A stretch of DNA of 64,000 nucleotides from Cycas panzhihuaensis (taxonomy: Eukaryota > Plantae > Cycadophyta): contig CM041465.1 in NCBI GenBank assembly GCA_023213395.1, positions 58,907,741-58,971,740 of the forward strand. Reading direction: 5' to 3'. Below the pieces are notes generated by a model, which ran no database searches, had not been told where the DNA came from, and saw nothing but the letters and a program-made list of their open reading frames with translations. The translations under genes and the position numbers were made by a program. Every line of letters starts with the position of its first letter. The stretch's first letter is position 1. Positions 392 to 30,602 of this stretch are shown piece by piece.

Positions 392-2078
392 GGAAGGAGG
401 GTGAAAATGAGATTCATTGTCACGGGCTTGTGATCGATCTGGAGCCCTTCCTTCTGCAGAGCAGAGTCTTACCTGACTTCAGGAGCACAGAGCGAGAGAT
501 TCGATCATTGGATCAAGGAAAAGAGATAGCCAATATAATCAAGACGATGAGATGGTAATGGTGATGTTGGATTTAGTAAGTTGATCGTCCCCTATCCCCT
601 TCATTTCATTGTTTATGTTTAGTGGCTTTTTGAGGTTTTTGTAGCTTGGTTTAGGCCCCTTAAGGGTGATTTAGGACCCTCTGGAGCTTGAACGAGGCCC
701 AGAGTGGGGGACAACTAGGGCATTAGGTAGCCCTGGTCCTACTGGGCTAGGCCTTAGCCCACTCAGACAAACTTTTGAGGTCTATTGGGCATCCCCCTCT
801 CCCCCTCCCTTTTTATAGGGGGAAACAATGGCCTTGCAGCAAAGATCACAGTGCCACAGAGTTTGCCGCAGGGTTGTTGATGGGACATGAGAACCTCAAT
901 GGGGCTCGTGTTAAACTTCATGGTACCACAGAGTTTGATGTGGGGCAGAGAGGACATAGTGGAAAAAAGAAGAAAAGAGGTCCATGGGGATGGCTAACTC
1001 AACCTACTGGAGCATGAGACGTCCTAAGGACGACTAAGCATGGTATAGAGAGTATTTGGACTGATACTCATGTCATTTTACAGGTGGTTCTTGTGATCGA
1101 TAATTGCGAGAACATATGAGTCACGATGATGAGATTCATAGAGATGATGTTACAAGGAGACAGGTAGATATTGAGATGTTGTGGGCTCTTGAAGATCATT
1201 AGGATGCCCCAATATGCGTTAGACCAGCATCTCCTAATGGATATAGTCTCTCACTGGGATTGTAGACAATACGTTTTCCACTTCCCCTGGGTAGGAGATG
1301 TGATTGTCATACTAGGGGACATCAAGAGGATTTTAGGGGTACCAATACGATAAGCGCCAGCATCGTTAGGTACATTGCCTAGCACAAACGTTACACACAC
1401 AGAGGCAGCGACATACTTCACAGGCTAGGGTAGGTAGGATCGATGAGGGGTGTCAGTGCAAACTATGGTGATGTCCAGGATTCCTCGAGTGAGTAAGTTC
1501 ATTACACTAGGCATTTTGTTTTGGATCTCCCAGAAATAGAACTACATGGATATTCTATGCAGATGGATGGTGTTTCATGGCTACCAGGAATGGACTTGAG
1601 ACAAGCAGGCTCAGGTAAGCACAGGTATATACTTCTCACTTTTATCCTCACTTTCGCTTGTTAGAAGTTGTTTAGAGTATTGTTTGATGCATGTTTGCTT
1701 GCCTTTTATGTGATCGCATTGCCTTCTCTGCTTGATCACGTTGCTTGCACCTGCCGCACACTATTTAGCCTATGACGACCCACCATGGAGCACTCCTTAG
1801 TGAGTCATGCACCCCATATGGCACTCAGTTGCATGTAACACCTCCACAACTCCTTAAACATTGTTGTTGGTAGCGATCCGCTCACATCAGCACTCCTATC
1901 ACCACTTTGAGCCCTCTTCTAGGTGTGATAGGACCTCTCTGAGACTTGTTTCTCTCTTTCGGCCATTTGCGAGCTACTTGGGCATGAGCTCCCAGCCTGC
2001 TAGGCCTTTGCACACCCCTCTGTTTGGCTCTAGGCCTTGGTTTTAACCTTATTTTGGCTTTTAGTCATGCACTGCTGC

Positions 2079-2134
2079 AAACTAAGTGGTACCGTGAAGT
2101 TTGCCATGGTGCCACAAAGTTTGCTGCGGTGCGG
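2079..2134. promoter_or_regulatory. Palindromic GGTACC-core motif array (20-bp period) in LTR U3
   Basis: AAACTAAGTGGTACCGTGAAGTTT with cores at 2088, 2108, 2128; same array in the 3' LTR at 16058, 16078, 16098. Regulatory role is inferred. Confidence 0.5.
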
Positions 2135-2259
2135 CTGTCTAAATTTATTTTCTTTAATCCATCATGGAAATTCTCACTCTTTTCGCAGAATTGCCATGTG
2201 GTGCCTTCGATTACTCACCCCCACCATAACCCTAATCGTTCGTTTAGGGTTGGGATGAG

Positions 2260-2266
2260 TATAAAA
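2260..2266 (+). promoter_or_regulatory. Putative LTR TATA box
   Basis: TATAAAA followed by a pyrimidine-rich leader; conserved in the 3' LTR (~16230). Confidence 0.55.
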
Positions 2267-4289
2267 CCCAAAAATGAATTCATTTTGCTCTCTTCTTCAC
2301 TCATTTTTGCTCTCTACTCCTTACATTCTGCCATTTCCCCCAGATCTACTCCTCTACTCTAGCTCCTCTTTCACAGGTGCATCTACTGCATCTCAGGCCC
2401 TGCTGCAGCGGCTCCAAGCTTCCCTTTGCAGGTCCTATCCATGGAAGGAGAATACTCTCAGTGCGCTAGCAAACAAGCTCTAAGGACTAAGAGCGACGTC
2501 CACGTTTTGCCTCCCCTTCAGCCCAAGTCTGAAATGCCTTCTTGACATAAGTTTTTCCTCTGGTTTTTGGAAGAAAAGGACTCTCCTCTTCTACCCTATA
2601 GGTACCCTTTCAACATCCCTTAGGTTTTCCTGTGATTTCTTTCCTTTATGAGAAGTTCTTTGGTCAATTTTTGCTCCTCTCTTTTCACTCCGAAGGAGCT
2701 TGTCTCTTTGCTTCCTGTCCTACACTGTTTTTCCTCTCTTTTCCTGCAAGCCTACTCTAGGGTGGCTGTGTAAGAGGGTTGCATAAGGTTGGGTGAAGGG
2801 AGAAAGGCGGGATCCATCCCCTTGTTGGCCTTCTGCCCAAGGGTTTACCCTTCCCTTCCTTCCTCTTCTACTCTGTGCCTCCCTCTGGAGTTGGGTTAGG
2901 GATAGCAAGAGGCTTATCTCAGTTCTAAATCAGCATTGGTAGCCCTCGCCACACTAGTTTCAAACTTGCACCCCTGAGTTTTAGGCATCACAAAAGCCCC
3001 AAAACCTGTCTCGGTTCAGTTTTGATCTTTAGATTGCCCCAACGTGATGATTTGCTGTTTGTAGCACCTTGTCCCTTGGGTCTACCCGTGCACCATCTCG
3101 TTGGTTTGTTATCTCTTCTACTTACTGTCCAGAATAGCCATCATACTCTTGTCTTTTCCCATTGAGGCTATGTGGAGGTATTTACGGGTAGGTTGGCCAT
3201 TCCGAGGCTAACCTTCCTATCTTAGTTATTACTTAGCACTGCTTAGATCTGAGATTTGTTTGGTGGTTTTTGGAGTAGAGTGCATTACCTTTTAGCTTGA
3301 TTTATTAGCCATCTTTTACATTTATATACATATTAGATGTACTTAGCAGCCCCCTTCTCTGGAAGGGAGAAACCTTTTCTTGTAATTGACAGGTTCACGG
3401 CGACAAAAGCACGGAAGAGGTGGACTTCTTTGATAGGTAAGCCCTTCGCTAGTGGTGCTTTCAGTTTCTTCCTTGTCTCCTTTTTTTGCTATTTTGCTTT
3501 CACATATCAGGGAAGGTACGGTCACCCCTCATCCATTTTAGCAACCATCGCCAACTAGTCCCACACCCATGTAGCAAGTTCAAGTGGACGAGTGCAAAAG
3601 GAGTGAAAGGGTGCGACGTTTCAGCCATGCTTCACTTCTAGGTACGCCTCCTCCCTTTCTTGTCTCTTTTTTGTGCTTTTGATGTTTACTTGCAAACTTT
3701 GCATGATAAGTCACATAAGAAACAAAAGAGAAATGAACACATCTTTTGCATTCATAAGCTCTTTTCTTTTTGTAATCGTTTACTTCGTATGTAGATAGGA
3801 TTTAGACATGAACCGTGTACTCTTTAAGCCCCATCTCATCCATATGTAAGACAATTTGTCCCTTAGTCTTGCCTTTGATACTTCGCACACTCTTGCTTGA
3901 CATACTACATAACAACCTAATCCTAGTCTACATCCCTCTCCTACTTGAGCTAGGTCGTCACATATCACATGTACCTACTTGCACGTTGCCTTCTCCCTCC
4001 TGTGAGAAGATGCAACCTTCTAGAGTCCCCCCTCCTCTTCCCAGCCATCCAAGGGGTAGGTGGGCCTCCTCCTTTAGGGCAACCTAAGGCCTTGCCTTGC
4101 ATCCTCCTTCCAAAGGTTATCCTAAGGTAATTGGGCACCATTCGTGGGTCCCGAACTCGTGCTCTGATGCTCGGACGCCTTGCATGGTGTTCTTTCTTAC
4201 CATTAGGATCCCATCCATAACTCGACCACTACCATTGATAGTTTATTCCCTTCTAAGTATAGAAGACCATCCCGTAGATGCGAATCCAT

Positions 4290-4307
4290 TGGCGACCATA
4301 CTAGGGA
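4290..4307 (+). other. Primer binding site of A (tRNA-Arg type)
   Basis: TGGCGACCATACTAGGGA, 1 nt after the LTR end; TGGCGAC start is typical of Tat/Ogre tRNA-Arg PBS. Confidence 0.8.
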
Positions 4308-4484
4308 CCTATCAGTAGGGGAGCTAGTCTCGTTTCTCTTTCTGTTGGTGCTATTACTTTCTGGTAATCTTCCTTATTTCCCCTTTCTATTGGGCAGCCC
4401 CCAACATGTGCTTCATACCCCCTTTCCTTCTAACAACTTTGGCAAAGGCGTTACATACGACGTTTCTCATGTCATTTACGAGGT

Positions 4485-7400
4485 TTGCCACCTTTGTTAG
4501 AAGACCTTTCATATCACCTACTTCCATCGTCAGATTCTGATTCAATAATGGAGGGCTATCCTTCTGACTGGGCATATCACACCTTCACTTCGGAAACTCA
4601 TGAGCTCCCTACATCATTCCCAAGGTCTACCCAAGATGGTAGTGACCCTATTTACTATCCGGGTGATCAACATCACCCGCTTGATGCCCATCCCTCTACC
4701 CACGTAGTAGAGGATTCATCTTCTCATGAGACTCACCTCCTAGGGGGTGATTCTTATGAGGAGCACCTTGAGGGGTCTACTTCATTTGAGATCCCGTCTA
4801 CCTCCTACGATCATGTAGTCACCCCTCCCCTTGACATGGTTAAAGCTCTCAATGAGTGCTTCTAAGCTACTCATCTTCAAACACGTTCTAGGTGGTTTGA
4901 AGATGTTTTGCGTGGTGGGACGTCTTCCTCATCCATATCCATTCCACCATCTTCATCTGCACCTACTCCTCCTACAACTAGTAACCCTTTCGTACCTTCA
5001 CACCAATCCCAGTTGCTTTCCACGTCTTCCTTGGGAACAACCATTACACCTCCTACCTCCCACCATGGTCCTAATACTTCGGGACCTCCTCATGGCATAT
5101 CTTTCTCCCAGCTAGGAGTTAGCTTGCCTTTTCCCAGCCAAGCCAACGTGCCACCTCCTAATATGGCACACGCATTCCCTAGTATGCCTAGAGGTCCTAC
5201 TAGCACCCCTTTCATTAGTCATGTGGGGCCTGCCCTCACATGGACTCAAATGCAACCCAACGATCCATCTCTTTACATACCCCCATGTTGTACATCTCAA
5301 CCTTAAGGGCAGGGTAAAGGGAACCCATTCCGCTTTATGGGGTGGACCCTCTTCACCCATATGGGGTCGTGCCTCCTACAGGTGGCCCATATGGACAAAA
5401 CCCCATCTCTTATTCTACATTTCCATCATCCTACATAGTCCCTCATGCTGTGCCTTCGTAAGAAAACTAGGTTTCTTTCCAAGGCACTTATCCACAAATC
5501 CCTTCTCAGCAAGGGACGTTTCCTCAAGGAGGGATGGGCCTTCCTCCTCCATCCGCTCCTTGTCCAGTTCCTCTTACTTCATTTGCCGATCCTATGATCC
5601 AAGCAAGGGCACGGCCCTTCATGGATTACAGGTTGACACCACTATCCGTTGAGATGCTAAGAACTAACTTACCACCTCATCCCCCTGAAGTTCCCAAATT
5701 CGATGGAACTTCGTCGCAAGACCCAACCGAATACGTGCGTAGTTTCTCTATGGTGTGCATTGATTACTAGGCTTACAACCACATATTGATAAAGCTATTT
5801 CCATGATCTTTATAGGGTGATGCCCTTAAGTGGTTTTATCACCTCCCTGCCCACTCTATCTTCTCATTCCAGCAATTGGTGGGCGAATTCATCAACTACT
5901 TTGATATAACTCGTCTATTCGAAAGCAGAATGAAATCCCTCCTTTCGCTCAAACAAGGTCATGATGAAATGAATCATGACTTTGTGCGACGATTCCATGA
6001 CCTCCTCCATTCCACCAAGGCTACCTTGCCTGAGGAATTGAAGAGGGATCTCTTCGTTAATGTACTGTGTCCCGAAGTCTATATAGAAGTCCTCAAGATG
6101 GGAGCAACTACGTGTGACTCCACTATTGTGAAGTGCTTAGCGTTAGAGGCTATTGAGATCCAAGCTGGACTCAAAAGGCCTCCCAAGCCCTCATAACATC
6201 GTGAGGTACCTCCCTCAACCAAGAAAACTAAACCTTCACAACCCACCAGGTCTACTTCTCACCTGACTGAGAAGACTTTAGACCCCCTTACTTCTGCCAT
6301 ACGCTTATTCGAGCACATGATGAAGGAGCTTAAACTTTAAGCCCCTTCATCACCAATGACGAACAAACAAATTCAATAGGCTTCTCAAGCTGCTCCTCCT
6401 AAGGGGGGTAATACCCAACCTTCTCAAGCAAAGAAAGCAGATCCTTCACTTGAGAAGAAGTGGTATTCCATCAATGGGGAGTGCTTCCATGATGACTCGC
6501 GTTGTCGGGTGCAACACCCTCGTGATGTCCCATAATGTGATTCGTCTCCTAGGCAGGCCTCGAGGCCCAATCTTGATCAACCCATCCATAAGGATCTATT
6601 CCCCAAACATGGGGAGTGTGATCGCAATACTCAACAAAGAAACAACCGAAACCAGGGTAGACCCCCTAATTCTCATCCTTCACACGGTAGAGGGAAGGGT
6701 GCATGAGATTCATCATCCTCCTCGCATTCCCCTAACCGCCATACTCCTTCACATTTGTGATCCTGCAATAAGAGAAAGAAGGTAATTTAGATGCTTGAGG
6801 CCACTCCCCTATATGCCCTAACTTAGTCTCAAGCTGCGAAAGAGGTAGCTGGCACCTCTACATCTACATCACACCTTGATCCTCCTCTGGAAGTCATTCC
6901 TCTGGAAATACCTTCGCTTCCCAAGAACATTCTCATCCACCCCGGTTGCTTCAACTTTAGGAGAGCCCTTACCCAACCCACAGGGAAGGGTAAGCCATTT
7001 TCCATAGTTGAAGAGCTTCACACCGTGGCCATCGGGATGTCCATCATGGATGTCTTGAAAAGCTATCCTAAGCAACAAACGCTCCTTCTGGAGGCTTTAG
7101 GGTTAAACAACGCGCCCGTTCACGCTTTGGGCATTGCCCAAGGTCGTAAACCCATCATCTCCTTTGATCCTAAAGATCTTCCCCCAGTTAGTGAAAGGCA
7201 ACGCTAATGGAACTTCCCTTTCACCATCACCATAGACACACATGATTGTACCTTGCGAAGGAACGTCGTTGACAATGGTTCTTCTGTTAATGCTATGCCC
7301 TTGCGTATCATGCAAGAGCTTGGCATCTCTGGCTTGGAACCCGTTCCATGGCAATGTCAAGGCTACGATGGTAGCGAGAAGACTCCTTCGGGGTCTGTCT

Positions 7401-10400
7401 CAATACCTCTCACTCTCGAGGATAAGACCATCCTCACTGACATCATTGTCCTTGATGTGGACATTAATTACAACCTCCTCTTGGGTCGACCATGGTTTGA
7501 CCAAATGGGAGCCGTGTGTTCCACCTGTTGGGGGAAATTTAAGTTTGTCCATAATGGGCAAATGAGAGTTGTCTCCCACGAGCGACCACCCGCAAAACGA
7601 ACCAGACCACCCACTCAAGTAAGCCATGGCCATACAAAGGGGAGTAAACGCCCTTCTACTTACACCTTAGCTTGCTCCATCGGTATTCTCGATCCTTCTA
7701 GCTATGAAGAAGATCCTACATCTTCTTATTCAAGTCTAACCCATTTCACCCCTATTAGTATTGGAAGCTACGGGTACCTCGTCATGTTTAGCAATGATGG
7801 GTCCCATGGCGAGGACGAGGACCTCCCTCACCCAGTTTCCTTCCTTCACGCTAGTAGGGGGTATTCTTCTCGTTCTAGGTCCCAACTTAGGACCCCTCTT
7901 GTTGAAGAGCCCAATCACTCTCTCATGTCACATGTTATTGCACGTGTTAACAGTCAGACCCCTGGCTCTTCCCTTCCATCACCTCTCACAAGTGATGGTG
8001 TCAAGAGTTTTCCTTATGCCTCTTACGAGAGGCCTTTCCTCGACTCTCCCTTAGAATCCCTTAGGGATGTTGGGCAGCTTACGGGTCATCCTGGTCCTAT
8101 TGCTCCCATTCCATCTTACACCTCATCCATTTGAAGTAAAGTCATCCATGGGGTGGATTACTTCGAAGACGACGAGGCCTTGCTAGAGCACTTAGCAGGC
8201 TCCACACCCAACTTACCTTCTGGTCACCATAAGCTTGGCCACCAGAAGGTCCTGGTGATTGGATCCACATTAGCCAACCCAATCCCATCCTCCATTCCAT
8301 CTCCTCCCGTTGACCTTACCCCTCTCTATTTCGAGGAGGGGAACTCCATGTGTATGGGAGCAACTCAGGACATAGTCCTCACCCTGGGCAAGGTCATTAA
8401 GGTAGGGGCAGAATGTACCCCTAATAAAGCAAGAGAATACTCCCTTTTGTTCCAAGAGTTTCGAGATGTCTTCATGTGGGACTACTTTGACATGAAGGGA
8501 ATTGACCCTTCCATTGTCACCCACAACCTCACCACTATTCCTGGCACTCGCCCTGTGTGCCAGAAGTAGCATCCTCTCCATCCTAAACTCTCGGCCACCG
8601 TCAAGATGGAGGTTGAGAAACTCTTGGATGTAGGACTTATCACTTCTATCAACTACCCCAAATGGGTATCAAACATCGTCCCCGTTGCCAAGAGGAATAG
8701 GACCATCCAGATATGTGTTGATTTTTACAACATTAATAATGCATGTCCCAAAGATAACTTCCCACTCCTCTTTATCGATCAAATCATCAATCGAACCGCT
8801 GGATTTGAAGTCATGTCCTTGATGGATGGCTTCTCTGGTTACAACCAGATATAAATTTCTTCTGAAGACCATCATAAGACGGCCTTCACTACTCCATGGG
8901 GTACTTTTGCCTACAAGGCAATGCCTTTCAGAATTAAAAATGCAAGAGCCACATACTAGAGGGCTATACATTTTATTTTCCATGACCTCATCAACAACAC
9001 ATTAGAGGTCTTTATGAATGACATGATGGGTCTCTCGCGTACTAAAGCTCATCACCCTTCAGACTTGTGGGCCATCTTCACACGATGCCATAAGTATCAT
9101 GTTAGTCTCAACCTGCTTAAATACATGTTTGTTGTTACTTCTGGCAAACTCTTGGGGTTCCTTATGTCAAAGTAAGGGATCCAAATCGATCTAGATAAAG
9201 TTAAGGCAATCCTTGACATACCTCCTCCTAGAACGCAATGACAAATCAAGTCATTTCTAGGTAGGCTCAGTTTCCTTAGGTATTTTTTGGCAAACTTCGC
9301 CATAAATGCCAAACCCCTTACCAACCAATTAAAGAAAGGAGCCCCATTTGTTTGGTCGATTAAGGCCCAACAAGCCTTTGAAGGACTAAAGGAAGCACTC
9401 ACCTTTGCTCCAACGTTGGCGCCTCCTCGCTTTGATAGGCCCTTCATCTTGTATACCTCGGCAACCGATGAATCCTTGGGCGCAATGCTCATGCAAGAGG
9501 ATGATTTAGGAATTGAGAGAGTGATCTATTTCATCAGCTGTACCCTTGTGGCTGCTGAGCTTAACTATCACCCCATCGAGAAGGAATGTCTCTCCTTGGT
9601 CCATGCGACCAAGAAGTTCAGACATTATTTACTTAGAAACACTACCAAGGTGATCGTCTAATCTGATCTCCTGCGCTTCTTACTTAATCGATCTGACCTA
9701 ACTGGTAGGACTGGTTATTGGGCCATCGTACTCCAAGAGTTCAACCTTCAAATCATTAATAGGAAGTTGAAGAAGGGAATGATAGTGGCAGAGTAACTAG
9801 CCGATGCCCCTATTCCCAACATATGCGACGTTCCCGTTGATAATTCTCTCCCTGACGAGTCTATCCTGACCAGCCAAGGCACCTCTCCTCCTCCGCTCAC
9901 TGATAGTGAGTGGTATGATGACATTGTGCGGTATCTCACTTAGTAGCAATACCACCCTGAAGCTAGAAACAAAGTCAGGTCATGCATCTGCGCCACCGCT
10001 AGACTATACTTCCTCATAGACGAAGTGTTGTATAAAAGATCCTTTGATGGGATCCTTCTTCGCTGCATCGCTTTGGACGAAGCGGACCATATACTCTGCG
10101 AATGCCATCATGGAACTTGTAGGGGGCACTTTGGGGGCCAATCCATGGCCCAAAGGATCCTCTGCATGGGCTATTATTGGTCGTCCCTTTTCAAGGATGC
10201 CCATGCCTATGCCCTGAGATGTTGATGATGCCAAGAGTATACCAATATATCTCACGTGCCTTCCGAGGCCCTCCATCTTATCATATCTCTATGGCCCTTT
10301 GCTCAATGGGGTTTAGACCTCATTCGTGCCATATCACCACCTTCTTCGTCACAACACAAGTACATCTTAACTGCCACATAGTATTTCACAAAATGGGTAG

Positions 10401-11155
10401 AGGCAATCTCTCTGTCTATTACGCCTGGCAAGACGACAACCACCTTCGTCTACCAACACATCATTTGCCACTTCAGGATTCCAAACGTCTTGATCACAGA
10501 CAATGGAACCCCCTTCTGTAACAAGGAGATGGATGAGCTTGGTGAGAAGTTCAAGATTTCTCATAAGACCTCGTCTCCTTATTACCCTCAAGCAAATAGA
10601 CAGGTTGAATCATTCAACAAAACCCTTATTAACATTCTAAAGAAAACTGTCACGCAATCTCAAAGAGATTAGCATCTTTAGCTCCCTTCCACCTTGTGGG
10701 CCTATCGTACTTCTCTCCGTATAGCTACTAGAATGACACCATTCTCCTTAGTCTACAGAACCGAGGTGGTACTCCCACTGGAAGTGGAGATCTCCTCTCT
10801 ATGAGTCTCCCTTAGAGGTCTTATCGATGAGGAGTCTATCTGTCAGGCTTGCCTCTTAGACCTCGAGGCTCTGGATGAGAGATGTTTAGTAGCTTACCAA
10901 GCAAACCTCGCTTCGAAAGCCCACTCATAAAGGACTTACAACAAATATCTTCGTACCTGTCCTTTATACCCTAGGGACTACATCCTCAAGCTAGAATATC
11001 TCCATGATCTCCTAACCAAATTTGGGCCTAAATGGATTGGTCCCTTCATAATTCTTGAGAGCCTTGATAATGGCACTTATAGGATTGCCACCTTACAAGG
11101 CCTGGAATTTGAGAAGGCGGTCAAGGGAAAATTCCTCAAGAAATTTTATGCATGA
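4485..11155 (+). pseudogene. gag-pol polyprotein of A (gag, aspartic protease, RT, RNase H, integrase) with many stops and frameshifts
   Basis: gag PKFDGTSSQDPTEY..LKQG; protease VVDNGSSVN..LLGRPW; RT WVSNIVPV..CVDF..PKDNFPL..MDGFSGYNQI and FMNDM (decayed YMDD); RH YTSAT..NYHPIEKE; INT HHG..GH, ITDNGT, YPQAN.QVE, GPKWIGP. Start approximate. Confidence 0.95.
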
Positions 11156-11902
11156 TCCTCTCGGTGATCCCTTTGCCACGCTCTGAAATGAGCCTAAACT
11201 ATCGCCCTAAGCTTGTTCGCATTCCCCCTACCCTTAGGTGGAATGGATAGCTTAGGTCCTCATTCTTTTTTGTTCCTTCCGTAGGACCCTTGTTCCCTCT
11301 TTCTTGGGAACCTCGCCTCCATGTTTGGCCATCCCCCAATTAGGGTGACTCTTGAGGTGTCGTCACTTCCTCCCATCGCTATTTCCTTTGCATATCCCGC
11401 TATGCTCCCATGTGGACATGCATGTCACCCTGTCTCTTAGCCTTGCGTGTAGCCATCGCTACTACTCGTGGTGATCATATGTATCCCTACTAGAGATATA
11501 GTCCTACATGAAAGGAAATATACGTCTAGCTCATAATGAATAACACATCACATCCACATCAAAAACAAGCATAACTCTAGCTATACGATAGTCAAAACAT
11601 CACCTACTACATCATCATGCATCCGTGCATACTCACACTCATATACATATACTCTTATATGTACATACCAAGACCAAAACATCATAAACATACATATCCA
11701 TTGTGCATCCATTGCAATGTATACCACAAACACCATCTCATACGTTAAATGGGATACCAATCACCCCATCTATATACACAAAATCAATCCTCATAACATA
11801 CAAATGATAGTACATCATCCATGGGAAGCCGGTGTCCTTGCATGGGGGGTACAATCCTATGTCTCTACATGGTGACCCCCTGGAGGCCCATGCTTTCCCT
11901 CA

Positions 11903-14063
11903 TCACATCCTAACCTGCATCATACCCGACTGCTGCCCCTCTCCGGAGGCGTCATCTCCTGGTCGGTGTGATCTCTCTCCTGGGGACCACATGCCTCCTA
12001 GACTTCTCTGTAGCCTCCGGGAGCTCCCAGCCTCGTTTCCCCCATCGCGTGGCCTCCTCGGTGTCATCGCCGCTGTGTAGGTATGTGTCCTGTTCTGGCT
12101 CAACCTTGACGTCACTTGATCCACCAGCTGATCGTATCGAGCCTAGATATGATCTCTCTCACCCTCTACTCCCCAGAGTCTCTCCTCCATGCTCCGGAAC
12201 TTCTCCTCCATCCCTCGGAGATGCTCCTAAGGGAACATCTCCCTCACCACAACCTCCACCAACCATTGGATCTCTGTAGTACCTGTAAACCCAACATGCT
12301 ATATGTTAGTATATATCTAGCCACATACCAAACTGAAACCAAATCAAAGCGTGTGAGCATCTGGCTATCAAACAACGAGGAAAGTAAGGCCTCACCTACT
12401 GCGGTACCGGCTCCTCACTTTGTCTGATGGCCTCGCCTGCAGCACTCCACCCATTGCTTGGTGCCTCCTCCTATGCAACTACCTCCACTGCTAGAGCTTG
12501 CATCCCTCCCTTTCCTGGTGGAGCTATCCCCCTACGTCTCTCCACAATCCTCAATCTCTGAGCTCATGTCACAGGCCCCCTCATCTCCTTGACAGTCCCT
12601 GATGGGCCTGCCTCCTCTATAGCTCATGATGGGCTGGCCCCATCTCCTCCATCGCCTCCATCTCCTCCATCACTGCCGTCATCGTCTCCGGGGGCAACTC
12701 CTACCACTCCTGCTTCCTCGTCACTATCCCATCTCATCGCTCAATAGGGATCTGAGTTGTAGTCAGTCATGGTAAGGAGATCTAGCGACATAGCGTCCAC
12801 GGACCTCCTGACGTGTGCTTGATCCTCAACTCCCCTAAACTGGGTTTGCCATTTGTGTACCATGGGTGCCCACTCTAATATGGGGTGTGGTCCCCCTGGT
12901 GGTGCCATTGCTACAAAGTGATTGAAGAACCAGCACTGCAAGAGGGTGCTGTAAGACAATCCACCTCTACCCGCCATCCTAATAGCGTCCAACTGAGCGG
13001 CAAGGTTCACCGCTACGAGGGTGGCCCAATCCAATTGCTCCCCAGCGTTACACCTCTGTACCGCATCGATCCAGCGACCTGGGATGTCTCTATAGTTCTA
13101 TTTCTGGGATATCTGGAACATAAGGCATAGTGTGATCAGCTTCCTCACACGAGGAATCCCAGATATCACCATACTCTGCAGAGGCACTCCTTACCTCTCC
13201 CACCTGTCTTGGCCCATAAAAAACATAGCTGCCTCTCGATGGGCTGCCTTGTTGCTAGGCAATGCTCCTAGCGAGGCTAGTCTCCCTGTCACTGGCAATC
13301 CAAGGATCCACCAGATATGTTTGGGTGTCACTGTCACGTCCCCTACTTGGGGCAGATAGAACACGTGTCTCCGCCTGTCCCAATGCGACACGATGTCTAA
13401 CAACAACCTCTGATCCGATATGTACTGTGGCATCCTTGTGACCTTCAGTAGGCCACATCGCGCCAGGATCTACCGATCCTCCCTTATCATCAACTCTATA
13501 AAACTCAACATAGCCATACCAATGTTCTCGTGGTTCTCCACTGCGATCACCACCTGTAAAAGGCCATCAAATGTGTCAATCTATAGCCAACACCTACTCT
13601 CGGCCTCTTAGGGCTCTCCCTCAGCCTCATTTGGTCGAGACTTGGGGATGCTTGGGGCCTCCTTTTCATTTTTCACTCATTCTATCTTCGCACCGCGTTA
13701 AACTTCGTGGTACCGCTGAGTTTAGGCCAGGTCCCACGACGATCAGGGCCCCGCGGCAAAGATTGTGGCACTGCGATCTTTGCTATGGTGCAAACATCGC
13801 CCCCTAAAAGGGGGGGTTCCCAGACCCAAAAAACCCCAAAAATTCCTTGTGGTAGGCCACAGTTAGGTCCAATAGGACTAGGGCTGCTTAATGCCTTGGT
13901 CCCGCCCCTCTCTGTGTCTAATTCAGACTCTGGGAGGTTATTTTTCGCCCTTAAGGGGCCCAAAAATTACATTAAAATTTCATAAAAAAGAATCAAAACT
14001 CAAATGTGATTTCGAGAGGGGTTTTGGCAATCCACTCACTGGATTAGGCCGTGCGGTTATCAT
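11903..14063 (-). pseudogene. Antisense three-exon PMD gene of element A
   Basis: Exons 14063-14040, 13553-12396, 12282-11903 with GT-AG introns. PMD motifs LLLDIVSHWDRRRHVFYLPQVGDVTVT..ILGLPVTG and DWATLVAVNL...LLQCWFFNHF, then an acidic/Gly/Arg low-complexity tail. Contains stops. Confidence 0.85.
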
Positions 14064-14772
14064 CTCGCTCTCCCAGTCGCACTGGCTGCCTCCTCGCTTC
14101 GATCCAATGGCCAGATCTCTCACTGCGTGTCCCGAAAATGGGGTAGTGCTCCGCTGCATAAGGAACGAGCTCTGGATTTCGTACGAGAGCTCGTGAAAAT
14201 GAAATCCTTTTTCGTTCGAGTTTTCTTATATAGGCAGGGCCCCCCTTGGGCACTTCCTCATTTTTCGCCTTTAAAGCAGACTTTAAGACCACATTTTTGC
14301 CCTAGCCAACATTGCTTTCTGGCCCAGTTCCTCTTTTTCTCTCCGTGGTCTCCTTTCGATCGTTTCTCTCGATGCATTAATGATGCCCCAAGTGGCTCAT
14401 TTTTGTCGAAGCCCCCCTTATCTCGTTTTGCGTGCCACTCCCATGCATGCCTGAGTTTATACTCGTTTGGCTCATTTCGCTGTCCTAGACTCGCTTTCAC
14501 AACCTATTTTTGCTCTTAGCACTCCCATAGGGAGTGTCCCCTCTGGCCGGGCACCCCTTTGTGCTTCCTTAAGCCAGTTTGGGCACCCTAAAGGCCCCTT
14601 TTTCCACCATTTTCTTCCCCATTGGTGGGGTAGCTTTCCCTACCTTTAGGTCACCTCATTGCCAGGCCTTCATACCCCTTCATGGCTATCGTTACTAGCC
14701 ACATAGGGTCCTCTTCTTACCTCTTTCTTCAGTTATATTGCACTTCTTTCAGCAAAGAAGTCGTTCTTACTC

Positions 14773-15180
14773 ACGGCTCTTTTCATTTTCACCGATGGCA
14801 GAAGCCACGGTAATCCTGGTCCTTCTACAACCGCATGGATAATCTGTGATTCCTTTAGGCATGACTACCTATGCTCTAGAATCTTCCTTCCTGAGGCAAC
14901 CAATAATGAAGCTGAGTAAACGGCCATTATTAAAACCTTCACCAACATATTACGTTTCTATCACATACCCGTCATCCTTCTTTGCGACTCCCAAGTAGTG
15001 GCGTCTCATCTCATCCAAGTTACCAGGTGTGGTACCTATGCTTGAGAGCCTTAGCGTCGATCGTGAGGTCACTATTGGCTCACTTCTAGTCCTTCGACAT
15101 TTGCCATATTCCTCGGGCCCTCAATGCTGAGGCTGACAGCCTCGTTCGCCTCATCCTTGAGCATCGCCTCCCTCTTCTCA
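14773..15180 (+). pseudogene. Free-standing archaeal-type RNase H (aRH) of element A
   Basis: Translates to FIFTDGRSHGNPGPS...ATNNEAE*..A...CDSQVV...HIPRALNAEADSL; one stop, a frameshift, and ACG where C has ATG. Confidence 0.88.
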
Positions 15181-15549
15181 GTGACTACCTTTGAGAGACT
15201 TGCTTGGCCTGCCCGTTGCCCAAGTCTCTGGCTGCCTTTCTCCCAACTTGTTTGTCTAGTCTGTTGGTTGTCCTTATATTATCCATTGCATTTTAGTGAT
15301 GGGGGCATCCCCCCTTTTTCATTCCTTTCATCTTCAGGTCGACTTCCAGATGACACATAGGCAGCCCCTATGTTGCCCTCGTCTTTGTTTCCCTTATCTA
15401 TGCATTCCGCCACGACACTCACCGACACCCTTGGTCTATATTCTTTTCATGATTTATATATACACATGTGCTACTAACAGTTTTTGGTTGCCAACATTCG
15501 CCATCACACCATGCTTCCAAGCAGTGAGACTCTGCTGCCAATGGGACAG

Positions 15550-18261
15550 TGTTTCTCGGCTATCGGGAATGGACTTGAGACAAGTCAACTTAGGTAAGCA
15601 CATGTATATACTTCTCACTTTTATGCTCACTTTCGCTTGGTAGAAGTTGTTTAGAGTATTGTTTGATGCATGTTTGCTTGTCTTTTGTATGATCACATTG
15701 CCTTCTCTGCTTGATCACATTGCTTGCACCTGCTGCATACTATTTAGCCTATGACGACCCACCATGGGGCACTCCTCAGCGAGTCATGCATCCCATATGA
15801 CACTCAGCTACCCGCAACACCTCCACAACTCCTCAAATATTGTTGTTGGTAGCGATCTGCTCACATCAACACTCCTGTCACCACTTTGAGCCCCCTTCTA
15901 GGTGTGATAGGACCTCTCCGAGACTTGTTTCTCTCTTTCAGCCATTTGCCAGCTACCTGGGCATGAGCTCCCAGCTTGCCAGGCCTCTGCACACCCCTCT
16001 GTTTGGCTTTAGTTCTTGGTTTTATCTTTATTTTGGCTCCACTGCTACAAACTAAGCGGTACCGCGAAGTTTGTCGCGGTACCATGAAGTTTACTGCGGT
16101 GCGACTATCTAAATTTATTTTCTTTAATCCAACGTGGAAATTCTCGCTCTTTTCATGGAATTGCCATGTGGCACCTTCGATTACTCACCCCTACCATAAC
16201 CCTAATTGTTCGTTTAGACTTGGGATGAGTATAAAACCTAAAAACGAATTTATTTTGCTCTCTTTTTCACTCATTTTTGCTCTCTACTCCTCCTTACATT
16301 CTGCTATTTCCCCCAGATCTGCTCCTCTACTCTAGCTCCTCTTTCACAGGTGCATCTACTGCATCTCAGGCCCTACTGTAGCGGCTCCAAGCTTCCCTTT
16401 ATAGGTCCTATTCATGGAAGGAGAATACTCTCAGTGCACCAACAAGCAAGCTCCAGGGACTAAGAGCGGTGTCCACATTTTGCCTCCCTTTCAGCCTAGG
16501 TCTAAAAAGCCTTCTTGACACAAGTTTTTCCTCTGGTTTTTAGTAGAAAAGGACTCTCCTCTTCTGCCCTACAGGTACCCTTTCAACATCCCTTAGGTTT
16601 TCCTGTGATTTCTTTCCTTTATGAGAAGTTCTTTGGTTAATTTTTGCTCCTCTCTTTTCACTCCAAAGGAGCTTATCTCTTTGCTTCCTGTCCTGTACTG
16701 TTTTTCCTCTCTTTTCCTGCAAGCCTACTCTAGGGTGGCTGTGTAAGAGGGTTGCATAAGGTTGGGTGAAGGGAGAAAGGTGGGATCCATCCCCTTGTTG
16801 GCCTTCTCCCCAAGGGTTTACCCTTCCCTTCCTTCCTCTTCCACTCCGTGCCTCCCTCTGGAGTTGGGTTAGGGATAGTGAGAGGCTTATCCCAGTTCTG
16901 AAATCAGCATTGGAATCCCTCACCACACTGGTTTCAAATTTGCACCCTCAGGTTTTGGGTGTCACATAAGCCCCGAAACCTATCCCAGTTCAGTTTTGAT
17001 CTTTGGCTTACCCCAGCGTGACGATTTACTGTTCGTAGCACCTCGTCCCTTGGGTCTACCCGTGCACCATCCCGTTGGTTTGTTATCTCTTCTACTTGCT
17101 ATCCAGAACAGCCATCACACTCTTATCTTTTCCCATTGAGGCTACTTGGAGGTATTTACAGGTAGGTTGGCCATTCCGAGGCTAACCTTCCAATCTTAGT
17201 TATTGCTTGGTGCTGCCTAGATCTGAGATTTGTTCGGTGGTTTTTGGAATACAGTGCATTACTTTTTAGCTTAATTTATTAGCCATCTTTTACATTTATA
17301 TACATATTAGACGTACTTGGTAGCCCCCTTCTCTGGAAGGGAGAAACCTTTTCTTGTGATTGACAGGTTCACAGTGGCGAAAGCACGGAAGAGGTGGACT
17401 TCTTTGATAGGTAGGCCCTTTACTAGTGGTTCTTTCAGTTTCTTCCTTGTCTCCTTTTTTCGCTATTTTGCTTTCACATATAGAGGAAGGTAAGGTAGCC
17501 CCTCATCTATTTTGGTAACCATCTCCAACTAGTCCCACACCCATGTGGCAAGTTCGAGTTGACGAATGCAAAAGGAGTGGAAGGGTGCGATGTTTCATCC
17601 ACGCTTCACTCCCAAGTACGCCTCCTCTCTTTCTTGTCTCTTTTTTGTGCTTTTGATGTTTACTTGCAAACTTTGCATGCTAAGTCACATAAGAAACAAA
17701 AGGGAAATGAACACATCTCTTGCATTCATAAGCTCTTTCTTTTCGTAATTACTTACTTCATATGTAGATAGGACTTATATATGAACCGCGTACTCTTTAA
17801 GCCCCATCTCATCCATACGTAAGACGATTTGTCCCTTAGTCTTACCTTTGATACTTCGCATACTCTTGCTTGACATACTACATAACAACCTAATCCTAGT
17901 CTACATCCCTCTCCTACTTGAGCTAGGCCGTCATATATCACACGTACCTACTTGCACGCTGCCTTCTCCCTCCTGTGAGAAGACACAACCTTCTAGAGTC
18001 CCCCCTCCTCTTCCCGGCCATCCAAGGGATAGGTGGGCCTCCTCCTTTGGGGTAACCCAAGGCCTTGCCTTGCGTCCTCTTTCTGAAGATTACCCTAAGC
18101 TAATTAGGCACCATTCGTGGGTCCCGAACTCATGCTCCAGTGCACGGATGCCCTGCGTGGTGTTCTTTCTTGCCATTAGGATCCCATCTATAACCCAACC
18201 ACTACCATTGATAGTCTATTTCCTTCTAAGCATAGAAGACCATCCCGTAGATGCGAATCTA
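15550..18261 (+). repeat. 3' LTR of element A
   Basis: TGTTTC...GAATCTA, followed by TSD GATGG; preceded by a weak PPT (AATGGGACAG). Confidence 0.96.
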
Positions 18262-18920
18262 GATGGCTATGGTGAGGAGATACGAGGCCAGAGAGAGGTT
18301 GGATTAGGCTACCTTGATAGCGATAAATATGGTGGCACAGTTAGACATGATCCAAGTGGTAGGGAGAGGTAATTTTTCATATTTCACCCTACTGCAATAC
18401 TAGTTATTTGATTACTTTAGGGCAATGGCACCACCTAGAGGGCCTCATCGTATCTCAACATGAGTGCCCATGGTACATAGGTGGCAAACTTGGTTAAGGG
18501 GAATCGAGGATCAGGTACACATCAAGAGGTTCATGGAGGCAACATCCTTAAACCTCCTCACCCTGGCAGACTATACAATAGACCCATATTGGGGGGTGTA
18601 TTGGAATAGTGATGATGTAACATGGGAGTTGGGAGATGACCCAGATGAGGGTGGAGATGATGACAGAGGTGATGGGGCAGGCCTATTAGGAGTCACAGGA
18701 GGAGAGGTAGGTCCTTTAAGAGTTATAGGAGGAGAGGCAAATCCTTCAAGAGTTGTAGGAGGGGATAGGCCACTAGCACAGAGAGAGAGAGTAGCAGGTA
18801 GAGCTCCAGAGGCAGTAGTGGCAATGGCAGCAGCATGGAGACTAAAATAACCATAATAGATAGAGAAGAGGAGGTAGGACAGGCCCCAATAGCCCAAGAG
18901 ATAGGAGAGGTGGTATCAGA

Positions 18921-19597
18921 TGTTAGGTAATGTGACAACAATAGTTGGAGGCTAAACTTTTGACATGTTAGCAGCATGGTTTCCCCCCCAAACCTTCCTC
19001 GGGGGGTTCCAAGGGGGGTGGGAGGCCCCCTTGGCTAGGGGAGTGCGGGGGCTGTGGAACGCCCCCCACAAAGAGGGGGTTCGGGGGTGATAGCCCCTGA
19101 CCCAAAAATTTAGCATTGGAAAGTATATTAAATTGTAAAGAGAATCATGGTCATTCGCTCAAAATACCATAGATTCTACGGTCGAGATTTATGCCTTGGA
19201 TGACCCTCTCATGTAGCCCGATTTAGGGCATTTTTCATTATGTTGATAGTGTTCAATATACTGTGAGGTGTTGGGCGGCTGGTTGTTGTTGTTGTGAGCA
19301 CTCTGCTACAGGATTATGTACATTTTCTCTATTCTTTGATAATAAAGATCGATACCTTTCTTGTGTAGATGTTTCCCTAGCACACTGCTAGGGTTTTACC
19401 ATGTTATATTGGGTGTATATGTGATGTTTGGCTTTCTTATTTATTTTATTATTTTATCTCTAGTTTTAAGAACTTACATATTAAATTTTAGTTTTGATTC
19501 CTGTAACTAGTTACAAGAATAGTTTAGATCTTGGTGGTAGTTTAAGGGTTGGGACCTTATCTTCTCAACACCCGAGGTCGAGGAAGGTGGTCCAACA
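18921..19597. mobile_element. Putative solo LTR of an unrelated family, inserted in B's PMD gene
   Basis: TGTTAG...CCAACA ends, GC-rich G/C-run block then T-rich tail; absent from the A and C PMD genes. No clean TSD; left end could be 18931. Confidence 0.5.
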
Positions 19598-21215
19598 AAT
19601 AAGGGAGCTCCTGTGAAGGAGGTGGTTGTCAGAGTTGAGGAGCCAGCTGTCCCAGGAGGTGAGATACTACCCTTACTCGACATCTTTCGACCACTAGCTG
19701 CTTAGATAGCTTCCTTCAATTTAATTTTGATGCTTTCATATATACATATATATGTATAGACTAACACATGGTATGTGTAGTTTGGCAAGTGCAATAGAGA
19801 TGGGGAGGTTATTGGAGGTGGTAGTCTAGGAAGTATTCCCCCAGGGTCTATGAGGAGGGACAACCTTCCATCTAGGCTAGAGAGGAGCCTCAATCAACAA
19901 GAGCACACACAACATCATTCACCCCATTAATCAGGGCCAGAGATATGTGGGTGACGGAGTCCCAAGGATACCAAGTGAGGGTAGGACAACTATACGAGGA
20001 GTTGGATGGACCCCGCACATAGAAGGACATGCAGTTACCAAGAGGGATACCCTACGAGGCTGGGCCCAGGTGCTAGAGGCCCAGGGAGGAGGAACAACAA
20101 GCAAGGATATAGGGATCTAGATCCAGATCTCCATACTGGAGGAGGGACTCTAGAGAGAAAAGGAGGAGAGGGATTGTATCTAGGCAAAATACAATTAACT
20201 AGTGGAGTAGGTTACCACTAGATCATCATGAAGTAGGTCTCATACACACACGATAACGACAACCTAGAGGAGGCCTCGGGATGAGGGGAGCGAGTTAGGG
20301 AGCTTAGAGCGGTGCAGGAAGAGCCTAGGAGGCATGTGGTCTCCTAGCGAGGGGTCTTGTAGATGAGGAGATGATACCCCCTCAAGGCAGGACCCTGATG
20401 AGCTAGATACACGATTAGTTTTGAGTAGGAAAGCATTGGACCTTCAGGGAGTTACTCCATATATAGACATATGATTGTACTTTCTCCCTACAAGGATTCC
20501 AACTTCATGAGGATGATGTACTATATGGCTTTGTATAATATGATTCATTATATATATATGTAGATGGGGGTCAATTGTCATCCCATTTGACTGATGATGA
20601 TGGCGTTGTGATGGTTTTATGATGTTGTATTGCTATATTATTTATTTATTTATTTATGCATATGCATAGAGAGATGGATGCATGGAGATATGGGTGCATA
20701 GGTGCATGAGGGATTATTCATCATGATGATTTTAGTTGATTTGTTATATATGGCTTTTGTTGTTAAATCACTTGGATGACACTTGTGTTTCCTTTCATAC
20801 AAGACCACACTTGTAGTGAGTACACACGACCACCATATATGTAGGTAATAGGTACGTAGTGGCTAAGAGAGGGAGATCCACACATGTCCATCAAGGGAGC
20901 ATAATAGATATGCAAAGGAAATAATGGTAAAGAGGGAGTACAGGTACTCAAGCAAGAGGTCCTAGTTGAGGTATGATTCTGAGCTCATGAGCGATGAAAG
21001 TTTATACATCCAATTAGGAGGAGAGGTTTCCCTTGGGAGGGAAACAAAAGGATGCCATAGAAGAGATGGAATTATAAAGGTGAGAGGCCACACTAAGCTG
21101 CCATCCCACCTATGCTTAGGGGGAATGAAGACACACTTAGAGTAGTGGTTTAGGCTCATTTTGGAGTGAGAAAGGAAGAAGGCGGTGCGCCTAATCTACT
21201 CAGGAGTAGGGAAGG

Positions 21216-24200
21216 TCACACATAAAATTCCTTTAGGAACTTACCATTGACAGCCTTCTCAAACTCAAGACCCTTTAGAGTTGCAATCTTGTAGGCATCA
21301 TTATCAAGACTTTTAAGAACAATGAAAGGACCAACCCATTTAGGCCCAAATTTAGACAAGCGATTGTGGAGATACTCTAACTTGATGACATAGTCCCTAG
21401 GATGCAAAGGGTGAGGGCAAAGGCATTTATCGTACATTCTTCACGCCCTAGATTTAGAGGCAAGATTCGCTTGATATGCGATCAAGCATCTCTCATCTAG
21501 AGATTCGAGGTCAAGGAGGCAGGCCTAACGATTGGATTCCTTGTCGATAAGACCTCAAAGGGAAACTCACAAGGAGAGAATTTCAACTTCCAAAGGGAGG
21601 ACTACCTCAGTTCTGTACATGAGGGAGAATGGGGTCATCCCTATGGCTGTGCAGATCGAAGTGTAATATGCCCATAAAACTAAGGGAAGTTGAAGGTGCC
21701 AGTTTTTTTGATATTGAGCAATGATTTTCTTCAAGATGTTTATGAGAGTTTTGTTGAAAGATTTAATGTAGCCATTGGCCTGAGGGTAATAAGGAGAGGA
21801 AGTCTTGTGGGATATCCAAAACTTCTCACAAATCTCATCCATTTCCTTCTTACAAAAGGGAGTTCTATTATCTATGATCAAGATATCAGGAACCCTAAAT
21901 CAACAGATAATATTCTAGTAGACGAAGGTAGCTATCACCTTACCAAAAGTAGAAGACAGGGGGACCACTTTGGCCCATTTAGTAAAGTATTCTATCATAG
22001 TCAAGATAAACTTGTGCTATGACGAAGAAGGAGGGTTATACCTCTAATAAGGTCTAATCCCTATTGGGAGAAAGGCCATGGAGAGATAATAAGGTATAAG
22101 AAGGCACTATTTTTGTGACACAGGGTGAGTGCCTAGAATGGTAGTGAGGTTATGGGTGATAATAGAAGAATATATTCTCTTCATGTCAATGTAGTCCCAT
22201 GCGAAGACGTCACAGAACTCCTGAAAAAGAAGGGTGTATTCCTTTATTTCTTCAGGAGAACATTCCCCTCCCACCTTGATGACCTTGTTGGGAGTAAGGA
22301 TAATGTCCTTGGTTTCCTCCATGCACATGGCATTCCCTTCCTCGAAGTGAAGGGGGGCTTGGTCAATAGGAACTGGTGAATAAGAGGAAGTTAGACTTGA
22401 GTCGGCTAAGGACAACCTAAGGGCTAAAATCTTCTGGTAACCAAGTTTATGGTGACTAGGAAGGAGATTGGGTGCAAAGCCTGCTAGATGCTTTAACAAG
22501 GCCTCATCATTCTCAAAATAATCTATCCCATGAATAGTTACACTTAGAGGAGATGAGGAGTGTGGAGTAAGAGGAGCTGTAGGACCATAGCAGTCGACCC
22601 ACCACTCAACATAGTCAGGAGACTCTTCGGAAGAGTCAGAGGGTGACCTCTTATGATAGATGATAAAAAGTTCCCTCACATCATTGCTCGAAGAGGGTGA
22701 TGAGGCAGGAGATGAAGTGAGATGGGAGGTCATATGAGAGACGGGAGTAATGATATGTGACTTGAGAGGAGGATTAAGCTCCTCAATAGAAGAGGCTTTA
22801 GGTTAAGAACTAAAATGAAGGGAGCACCCCCTACTCATGTTTAGGAGGGATATGGGATGATGGAGGTCCTTATCCTCACCGGTGGACTTATTGTTGCTCA
22901 GCACAGTGAGGTACCCATAACTCTCCACACCAATAGAGGCAAAACGAATGAGGTTAGAGGAAGAAAAGGGGGGCCTTATTCCGAGCAAGATGGACTAGGA
23001 ATGTCGATGGAGCAAGCAGAAGCATGGGCAGATGGGCTCTTGTTGCCCTTCGCCTAGTCATGAATCACTTGTCAGGATTGGTGTAATTACTTGGTAGGAG
23101 GAGGCTCCTAGGAAACAACATTCATTTGTCCTTCTTGGATGAATTTAAGTTGACCCAATGGGATGAACACATGACTCCCATCTGATTGAGCTATAGACAT
23201 CCCAACAAAAGGTTGTAATCTATGTCTACATTGAAGACTATAATGTTAGTAAGAGGAATGGAGATTGACCCCAAAGGCATCTTTTCACTACCATCATAGC
23301 GTTAACAATGCTATAGGATAAGCTTAAGAGCTATTATGCCCAACTCTTGCATGATTCGCAAGGGCATAGCGTTGACAGAAGAATCGTTGTCTACAATAGT
23401 CCTTCAAAGGGTACAGTCAGGAGTGTCTATGAATATAGTGAAAGGGTAGTACCATTAACATTCCCTTTCACCAATTAGAGGGAGATCTTTAAGGTCAAAT
23501 GAGATGACATGTCCATGGCTTGGGACAACACCCAAGACATGAACAAAAGCATCAACTAACCTTAAAGTCTCTAGGAGGAGAGTACGCTACTCTAGACAGA
23601 TTTTCAAGATGTCTATCATGGACATTCCTGCAACCATGGTGTGAAGCTCATCGATGATAGAGAAGGGCTTCCCCTTTACGATGGGTTGGGGAAGCACCCT
23701 TCAAAAATCATAATGATCAAGGTGAATAGGGATTGTTTTGGGAAGTGGAAAGATCTCCAAAGGAGGATTCTCCAAAGGACGGTCAAGATGAGAAGAAGAA
23801 GAAGCACATATTACTTCTTTAGTTGCTTGGGATCGGGTCAAGGCATATAAAGGCATGGTCTCAAGCATCTAGATGACTCTCTTTCCCTTATTATAAGATC
23901 AAGAGGGAGAAGGAGTTCAATGGTGGGAATCAGAAGAGGAAGAGGGGTTCCTTGCCCCCTTTACCTTGGTTTGCATGGGATGAGGGTTGGGGGACCTTCC
24001 CCTATTTCAATTCTCTTTTTATTAGGTATGATGATCTCGTTCCCTATGTTTGGGGGAAGGATCTCTATGAACGAGTTGGTCTAAATTGGGCCTAAATGCC
24101 TATTTAGGAGAAGAGTCATGATGTGAGGTGGATTTGGGATGTTGTGCCCTACACTGTGAGTCCTCATGAAAGTACTCACCATGAGTGGAACACCATTTTT

Positions 24201-26240: not shown

Positions 26241-26393
26241 GAGAATCGTCGCATACAAGTCTTTCTTAAAGGTTGGAAGAAAAGGAAATAACAGGATGAT
26301 AGATATTGGGTGTTGCACAACGAATTGACGAAGGCTACTAAAGGAGAAGTAACACCAATAGAAAAGGGAATAGAATAGACCTCTTACTGAAGA

Positions 26394-29400: not shown

Positions 29401-29653
29401 TGTGGAGACACGGCAAAGGGTCATAAGATGCCATGGGATACATATCCCAAGCCGTCATAGGGTAAAGTGTTAAGATGCAACATGAGTATGCAAGTGAGCC
29501 AAGCACAATGATCATGCAATCAATCAATCAATGTGCACTGTGCATCTATTGACAATCCAATAGCATCTTAAAGCCAATGAAAGTGAGGATAGACACATAC
29601 TTGCACTTACTTGAGGTGAGTCATCCATGTCCATTCCTAGTAGTCAAGAAATA
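26414..29653 (-). repeat. 5' LTR of element B (~3.2 kb)
   Basis: Minus strand starts TATTTCTTGACTACTAGGAATGGAC (compare A TGTTTCATGGCTACCAGGAATGGAC) and ends TTTCA before the PBS. Confidence 0.85.

Positions 29654-30289: not shown

Positions 30290-30602
<313 letters not shown>

Follow-up and report, generated by a model that had tools for sequence, protein, structure and literature searches.

The window analysed here is a stretch of 64,000 nucleotides from the cycad Cycas panzhihuaensis (GenBank assembly GCA_023213395.1, contig CM041465.1, positions 58,907,741 to 58,971,740 of the forward strand). Self-comparison resolves it into three nested, related Ty3/Gypsy retrotransposons, hereafter A, B and C. 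Their Pfam content, comprising gag, reverse transcriptase-RNase H, integrase, a stand-alone RNase H and antisense PMD fragments, fits the Tat-like lineage of that superfamily. An array of short palindromic units lies in the U3 of the long terminal repeats (LTRs) of A and B, upstream of a putative TATA box, and related arrays occupy the first intron of the antisense PMD gene in A, B and, in an altered form, C. In window coordinates, the arrays are:

2068-2133, plus strand: array of the A 5' LTR, with cores at 2068, 2088, 2108 and 2128 (TGCACT, GGTACC, GGTGCC and GGTGCG) and three arms (AAACT, AGTTT and AGTTT)
16049-16103, plus strand: array of the A 3' LTR, with cores at 16058, 16078 and 16098
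29057-29122, minus strand: array of the B LTR, with four cores at 29057, 29077, 29097 and 29117 in a 20-bp period
13689-13734, minus strand: module 2 of PMD intron 1 in A, with cores at 13689, 13709 and 13729 and an exact palindrome at 13700-13723 between degenerate cores
13747-13792, minus strand: module 1 of PMD intron 1 in A, with cores at 13747, 13767 and 13787 (GGCCCC, GGCACT and GGTGCA on the plus strand) and arms AAAGAT/ATCTTT
830-875, plus strand: module 1 of PMD intron 1 in B, with cores at 830, 850 and 870, orthologous to 13747-13792 of A
902-947, plus strand: module 2 of PMD intron 1 in B, with cores at 902, 922 and 942 and an exact palindrome at 913-936
44343-44390, minus strand: array of PMD intron 1 in C, with cores at 44343, 44365 and 44385 (TGCACC, GGTACC and AGTACC)

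The repeat unit spans about 20 bp and consists of a GGTRCC core, four variable bases, AGTTT, in most cases GC, and a further three bases. Where an inverted unit precedes a direct one, the 24-bp palindrome AAACT-N4-GGTACC-N4-AGTTT results; it is found without mismatch at 913, 2079, 13700 and 16049, and with a single mismatch at 29068. A first-pass annotation of this DNA, made from the letters alone, had described such a palindrome with cores every 20 bp; both the motif and the core coordinates that it gave are correct when read against the sequence. The cores of the LTR arrays keep an exact 20-bp period, and Tandem Repeats Finder (TRF) reports a period of 20 at 16056-16100 in the A 3' LTR. The GGTACC core of that description holds for the central core of each module, as it does in the LTR arrays, but the outer ones deviate from it (for example TGCACT and GGTGCG). 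Likewise, the recurrence claimed for intron 1 of three PMD copies stands for A and B, the modules of B being arranged as in A with a longer gap between them, but is incomplete in C. The C array, with a spacing of 22 and 20 bp, aligns to module 1 and has different arms in place of AAACT and AGTTT, and module 2 with its 24-bp palindrome is deleted.

Across the five palindromes the AAACT, GGTACC and AGTTT blocks are invariant. In the N4 spacers the inner two positions are usually complementary, and the outer two are variable and non-complementary. The positions beside the core, written RY in the first-pass annotation, read CG, TG or CA among copies and look like decayed CpG. The centres of core and arms are about one helical turn apart, so that all contact blocks would face one side of the DNA. 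Invariant blocks of 5-6 bp alternating with variable spacers of 4-5 bp, whose outer positions are non-complementary, fit the idea, already put forward in the first-pass annotation, of a protein that would contact the DNA on one face.

Two types of known host-factor site were compared with the arrays. Sites for SBP-box (SPL) proteins, named in the first-pass annotation as an alternative host factor, were rejected: the GTAC core is present in the central cores, but the flanks CCGTAC / TNCGTACAA, which we take to be the preferred ones, do not match. The central cores read (C/T)GGTACC(G/A), with G always preceding GTAC, and many outer cores carry GTGC instead of GTAC. Separately, the only two matches in the window to the E2F-like pattern TTTSSCGS read TTTGCCGC and lie at orthologous module 1 sites, 862-869 in B and 13753-13760 in A. 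Two matches against 3.05 expected in the window are no enrichment, and their shared position counts only as a lead.

The motif is confirmed as real, family-specific within the window, and common to LTR U3 and PMD intron 1. With up to three mismatches allowed, the 24-bp palindrome is expected 0.35 times in the window, and none of 100 shuffled sequences reaches five matches. The half-unit GGTRCC-N4-AGTTT matches 15 times against 1.7 expected, with all but two of these matches (13/15) inside the arrays. A weight matrix trained solely on the nine LTR units was then scored with the LTR arrays excluded from its matches. Its best five outside matches in 64 kb (17.5-20.1 bits) all fall in PMD intron 1 of A and B, and 10 of the best 12 come from the intron arrays of the three elements. 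As a null, the best match was taken in each of 100 Markov-simulated 64-kb sequences; these maxima have a mean of 13.5 bits, a 95th percentile of 16.7 and a highest value of 17.7. Every strong match within the window belongs to A, B or C. A second LTR-like pair of direct repeats is present at 56884-57299 and 61814-62228 (4.9 kb apart, 81-88% identical), and the region 56884-62228 holds no matrix match above the null level. When GGTACC alone was examined for periodicity with up to one mismatch, only pairs emerged, 5 against 1.8 expected; the hexamer by itself does not account for the periodic signal, which arises from the complete 17-20-bp unit. A version of the pattern extended to 20 specified bases had zero exact matches across the whole metagenome collection.

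The LTR arrays stand in a fixed relation to the putative LTR promoters, whose TATA boxes are assigned from sequence only:

2260-2266, plus strand: putative LTR TATA of A (TATAAAA), with its 3' LTR counterpart at 16230
about 28932-28923, minus strand: TATA-like TTAAAAAATA of B, downstream of the B LTR array

The array extends from 192 to 127 bp upstream of this TATA in A and from 190 to 130 bp upstream in B, in keeping with the upstream position first reported. The two LTRs are too diverged for blastn to return a match at word size 11. A more sensitive search aligns three stretches, namely the LTR starts, the segment from the upstream edge of the array to the TATA, and the array in reverse, the last because the array is nearly palindromic. 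In a MAFFT alignment, the A-B identity is 0.34 in the LTR upstream of the array, 0.65 in the array, 0.57 from the array to the TATA and 0.37 downstream of the TATA. The array and proximal promoter thus form the only conserved island of U3 between A and B. The flanking DNA had been called unrelated, which is true by eye of LTR against intron but not of the LTR flanks, which are homologous between A and B. A TATA distance kept in two families with otherwise nearly unalignable U3 argues for a cis-acting function, and a conserved island at such a constant distance resembles a cis-regulatory element.

Other features accompany the array in this part of the LTR. An isolated core-like GCCATGTGGTGCC is found at 2189-2206, between the array and the TATA of the A LTR, and is partly kept in B as GACATATGGGG. 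A telobox-like AACCCTAA forms an inverted pair at 2228-2251 in the A 5' LTR and occurs as a single copy at 16198-16205 in the A 3' LTR, and a telobox-like AACCCTAG takes the aligned place in B at 28936-28943, each just upstream of the putative LTR TATA. Over the whole window teloboxes are not enriched (13 against 7.7 expected). Between the two LTRs of A, the divergence of the array reaches 20%, compared with 9% overall, and places it in the top 4% of windows; being more diverged than the LTR average, it shows that the silenced copies in the window are eroding the motif fast.

The second set of arrays belongs to the antisense PMD gene, for which the best-defined copy is that of A:

12744-14063, minus strand: antisense PMD gene of A, degenerate
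14063-14040, minus strand: PMD exon 1 of A, ATG plus seven codons
14039-13554, minus strand: PMD intron 1 of A, GTGAGT...TTTTACAG, with exon 2 from 13553
13433-13191 and 13034-12741, minus strand: PMD Pfam fragments of A
14226-14232, minus strand: PMD TATA of A (TATATAA), about 165 bp upstream of the ATG

All three PMD copies are antisense and broken, which is why the matches to PF10536 (E 9e-5 and 3e-5) remain below the gathering score. In a language-model atlas, the PMD pieces fall among PMD clusters. A full-library HMMER search with a PMD piece matched only three Logan fragments, and P0002 as query found no related loci among metagenome contigs. The predicted exon/intron structure is supported by features common to A and B and weaker in C: an ATG with seven codons, an intron 1 donor GTGAGT or GTAAGT in phase 0, and the acceptor TTTTACAG followed by conserved coding sequence. 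C has its own PMD TATA (TATAAAA) at about 44713. On this gene model the arrays lie 135-238 nt before the acceptor and about 430-540 bp downstream of the PMD TATA, and would thus be intronic and not at the promoter; the earlier statement that the motif is present at both promoters does not hold on the PMD side. The arrays take orthologous positions in the three lineages, between which the PMD pieces have no more than about 41-57% identity.

The PMD gene lies head to head with the stand-alone RNase H gene (RVT_3/RNase_H), at 14064-14700 and 44640-45200. The spacer between them, about 0.6 kb long, holds the PMD-side TATA box and may be a divergent promoter region. The stand-alone RNase H of C retains an intact open reading frame of 137 aa at 45261-45674.

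The limits of the three elements are as follows:

1571-18261, plus strand: element A, inserted inside the PMD gene of B
1571-4288, plus strand: 5' LTR of A, 2.7 kb, with TG..CA ends
15550-18261, plus strand: 3' LTR of A, 2.7 kb, with TG..CA ends
18385-26251, minus strand: internal region of B, whose 3' part resumes at 1-1570
26414-29653, minus strand: 5' LTR of B, with the primer binding site junction at 26414/26413
from a gag start at 32159, plus strand: element C, with PMD at 44106-43382 (minus strand) and RNase H at 45198-45674

Element A is flanked by a 5-bp target duplication, GATGG, at 1566-1570 and 18262-18266. Its 5' and 3' LTRs are 9.0% diverged, with 244 differences of which 211 are transitions. 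The start and promoter region of the B LTR are homologous to those of A. The 5' LTR of C ends at 31901 and is followed by a primer binding site of the same type (CTGGCAACCATA...); B abuts this LTR and probably truncates it. A C LTR array was not found, and no 3' LTR partner of C is detectable within the window. Where the interior of the C 5' LTR is expected, a large inverted structure occupies 30290-30602, with 77-bp arms that are 93.5% identical and enclose (AT)n(AG)n and (TC)n(TA)n microsatellites. Further on, a 212-bp direct repeat (94% identical) at 33494-33705 and 38955-39166 brackets a segment of about 5.2 kb that interrupts the gag region of C and could be an insertion with a long flanking duplication or a small LTR-type element.

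From these data we propose that the motif forms a family-specific cis-regulatory array of binding sites shared by the two transcription units of the element, a reading to which we assign a probability of roughly one half. In this model, a sequence-specific protein, probably a dimer or multimer, would bind to the arrays and contact cores and arms from one face of the DNA. One and the same factor would act on both the LTR promoter and the first intron of the antisense PMD gene, either as an activator or as a protection against silencing. Protein binding and regulation are what we infer from the anatomy, positions and conservation pattern of the arrays, which are read directly from the DNA. As for the nature of the protein, a host transcription factor is a tentative and somewhat doubtful candidate. 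The U3 enhancer repeats known from plant LTR retrotransposons, such as the BII boxes of Tnt1 and the 13-bp repeats of Tto1, are host-factor sites upstream of the TATA, and these direct repeats are bound by host MYB-type or stress factors. The arrays resemble them in being short tandem repeats upstream of an LTR TATA; we know of no repeat of the Tnt1/Tto1 type that is duplicated in the intron of an element-encoded gene.

Several observations weigh against this cis-regulatory reading. The A-B identity of the intron arrays (0.52-0.63) is no higher than that of the remaining intron (0.54-0.58), and independent lineages number only two for the LTR and three for the intron. No RNA run contains the stretch, and the sole sequencing run listed for the species, a small contig set, contains no splice joint at the predicted intron and no starts; relatives of the family in this run show C and G more often at sites where the window copy reads T and A. 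In each of the three LTRs, moreover, the array is a strong hairpin, and one consensus hairpin can be fitted to all of them, which leaves room for a structural or RNA role. Finally, the LTR and intron arrays could share their descent through an old duplication instead of reflecting selection for a common factor.

A rival reading takes the arrays as a neutral relic, in which a slippage-prone palindromic repeat was duplicated once between U3 and the internal region and has since been inherited without function. The arrays are indeed short and repeat-like, as are sequences that grow by slippage, the lack of extra conservation in the intron would be expected, and module 2 was lost in C. Yet arrays have been kept at both sites across lineages with about 30-60% sequence divergence, those of the LTR form the conserved island of U3 at constant TATA distance, and invariant blocks alternate with spacers whose outer positions vary freely. 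Moreover, since the arrays decay fast in silenced copies, their persistence in lineages implies selection in the active masters. We consider a relic very improbable.

A second explanation, which may coexist with cis-regulation, is that the palindromes act through their structure, as RNA hairpins or DNA cruciforms, by giving rise to miRNA-like or 21-22-nt small RNAs that feed silencing, or by another structural action. Both arrays would be included in the 3' portion of the genomic RNA, and the intron copy in the PMD pre-mRNA. The precedent is found in Sireviruses (Ty1/Copia), whose LTRs contain clusters of palindromes upstream of the TATA, described as hairpins, as hotspots of small interfering RNAs and mutation, and as a conserved backbone among families with otherwise different LTRs (Bousios et al. 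2010, PMC2829016; 2016, PMC4728375). The present arrays share with that description the clustering of palindromes in U3 upstream of the TATA, hairpins above shuffled controls, a divergence hotspot and a conserved backbone; in particular, the divergence peak in the LTR pair of A matches the 'hotspot of sequence evolution' reported for Sirevirus palindromes (PMC4728375). Folding as RNA gives -45.7 kcal/mol for the A 5' LTR (z -7.5 against shuffles), -34.8 for the A 3' LTR (z -4.8) and -26.6 for B (z -3.9), and excess stability is also seen for the C array (z -4.0) and for intron module 1 of A (z -2.8). With DNA parameters, the three LTR arrays fold at z -5.3, -3.3 and -3.3. A single consensus hairpin accommodates the LTRs of A and B with most pairs retained.

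This folding has to be set against the fact that arrays of near-palindromic units fold well by construction. Intron module 2 (z -0.3 and +0.3) and module 1 of B (z -0.4) have no excess stability and nevertheless keep the motif blocks; in sum, the blocks are kept everywhere and the hairpin potential in the LTR only. The covariation term of the consensus hairpin (+1.57) is not supportive, and its two double changes sit between A's own LTRs and look like CpG decay after insertion. No Rfam family reaches its gathering score, and the generic matches to miRNA hairpins score 15-20 bits against gathering scores of 51-95. The elements themselves differ from Sireviruses in superfamily, since their domain order (gag, RT-RNase H, integrase plus stand-alone RNase H) is that of Tat-like Ty3/Gypsy and not Ty1/Copia, and in motif. 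The available sections of the Sirevirus papers do not mention a second copy of the palindromes in an accessory-gene intron. On balance, we regard a structural role as rather unlikely.

Within the favoured cis-regulatory reading, the binder might be the PMD protein of the element itself, which would act on the LTR and own-intron arrays in an autoregulatory or anti-silencing loop. The comparison with VANC proteins, first drawn in the first-pass annotation, is apt in its layout. In the DNA transposon VANDAL21, the protein VANC21 binds a 9-bp motif whose arrays occupy introns of VANC21 and VANB21 as well as the region upstream of VANA21, with tandem-repeat turnover as the mode of motif evolution (Hosaka et al. 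2017, PMC5735166); VANC arrays in VANDAL elements are also treated by Sasaki et al. 2023 (PMC10398659). Common to both systems is a short, family-specific motif that forms repeat-like, fast-evolving arrays in noncoding DNA of the element, one location being an intron of the accessory gene itself and another the region upstream of a second transcription unit. A, B and C likewise encode a candidate DNA-binding accessory protein, now present as antisense PMD fragments. The VANC motifs, however, are 9-bp, non-palindromic, in one orientation and of high density, whereas the arrays described here have 3-6 units of 20 bp with inverted symmetry. They differ as well in that the host is an LTR retrotransposon and that the accessory protein is PMD and not DUF1985.

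A closer relative of the candidate protein is provided by the host. According to a 2025 preprint, the PMD-C proteins MAIL1/MAIN and MAIL2 oppose Polycomb silencing and occur in association with two motifs, M1M and the palindromic M2M, which often lie beside teloboxes in Arabidopsis promoters; the structure of PMD-C is similar to the DUF1985 of VANC, and the authors ask whether transposon-encoded PMDs likewise counter Polycomb through motifs (bioRxiv 10.1101/2024.09.27.615353). Here too, a PMD is paired with a specific, sometimes palindromic motif near the start of a transcription unit, and the telobox-like sequences adjoining the LTR TATA in A and B recall those of the published promoters. This likeness is one of layout. 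The PMD-C modules are host genes of clade PMD-C acting at host promoters, unlike the PMDs of retrotransposons, which the same preprint assigns to clades A1/A2.

A further hint comes from C, which has both the most divergent PMD and different arms, in contrast to A and B, which share their arms. This is a single lineage, and the LTR array of C lies outside the window. The case for the element's PMD is also reduced by the state of the three copies, all broken, by the telobox count, which is not raised over the window, and by the sequence itself, in which nothing points to this protein as the binder. The preprint states that direct DNA binding by PMD is not demonstrated (bioRxiv 10.1101/2024.09.27.615353). 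We therefore hold this sub-case to be unlikely. It can be extended to a scheme in which a spliced antisense PMD-A protein would bind the LTR and own-intron arrays, shield the element from silencing by Polycomb or DNA methylation and coordinate transcription of the two strands, as a retrotransposon counterpart of VANC ancestral to the motif modules of MAIN/MAIL; this scheme, too, we would think improbable on present data.

Retand/Tat elements offer a related setting, in which antisense open reading frames have been proposed to bind DNA and regulate the element and in which tandem arrays lie between pol and the 3' LTR (Vicient 2025, PMC11963269). The elements of the window share with them a long region from pol to the 3' LTR with an antisense gene and repeat arrays. 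They differ in that the antisense frames of that report are mostly TRP28, and neither PMD nor a motif shared with the LTR is mentioned there (PMC11963269). The closest known systems are the VANC motif arrays, the PMD-C/M2M modules and the Sirevirus LTR palindromes.

The element family provides a test case in which a PMD gene is combined with a defined candidate target motif, located both at the promoter of the element and within an intron of the PMD gene itself. Transcription of most plant LTR retrotransposons is considered to rely on factors of the host, and VANDAL DNA transposons are, to our knowledge, the only case in which elements have been shown to encode a sequence-specific anti-silencing activity. 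If the PMD-A scheme were true, a plant LTR retrotransposon lineage would possess its own sequence-specific regulator. Even with a host binder, the array would be the conserved promoter core of an abundant Tat-like family, and a clean cis-element for reporter, footprinting and small-RNA studies.
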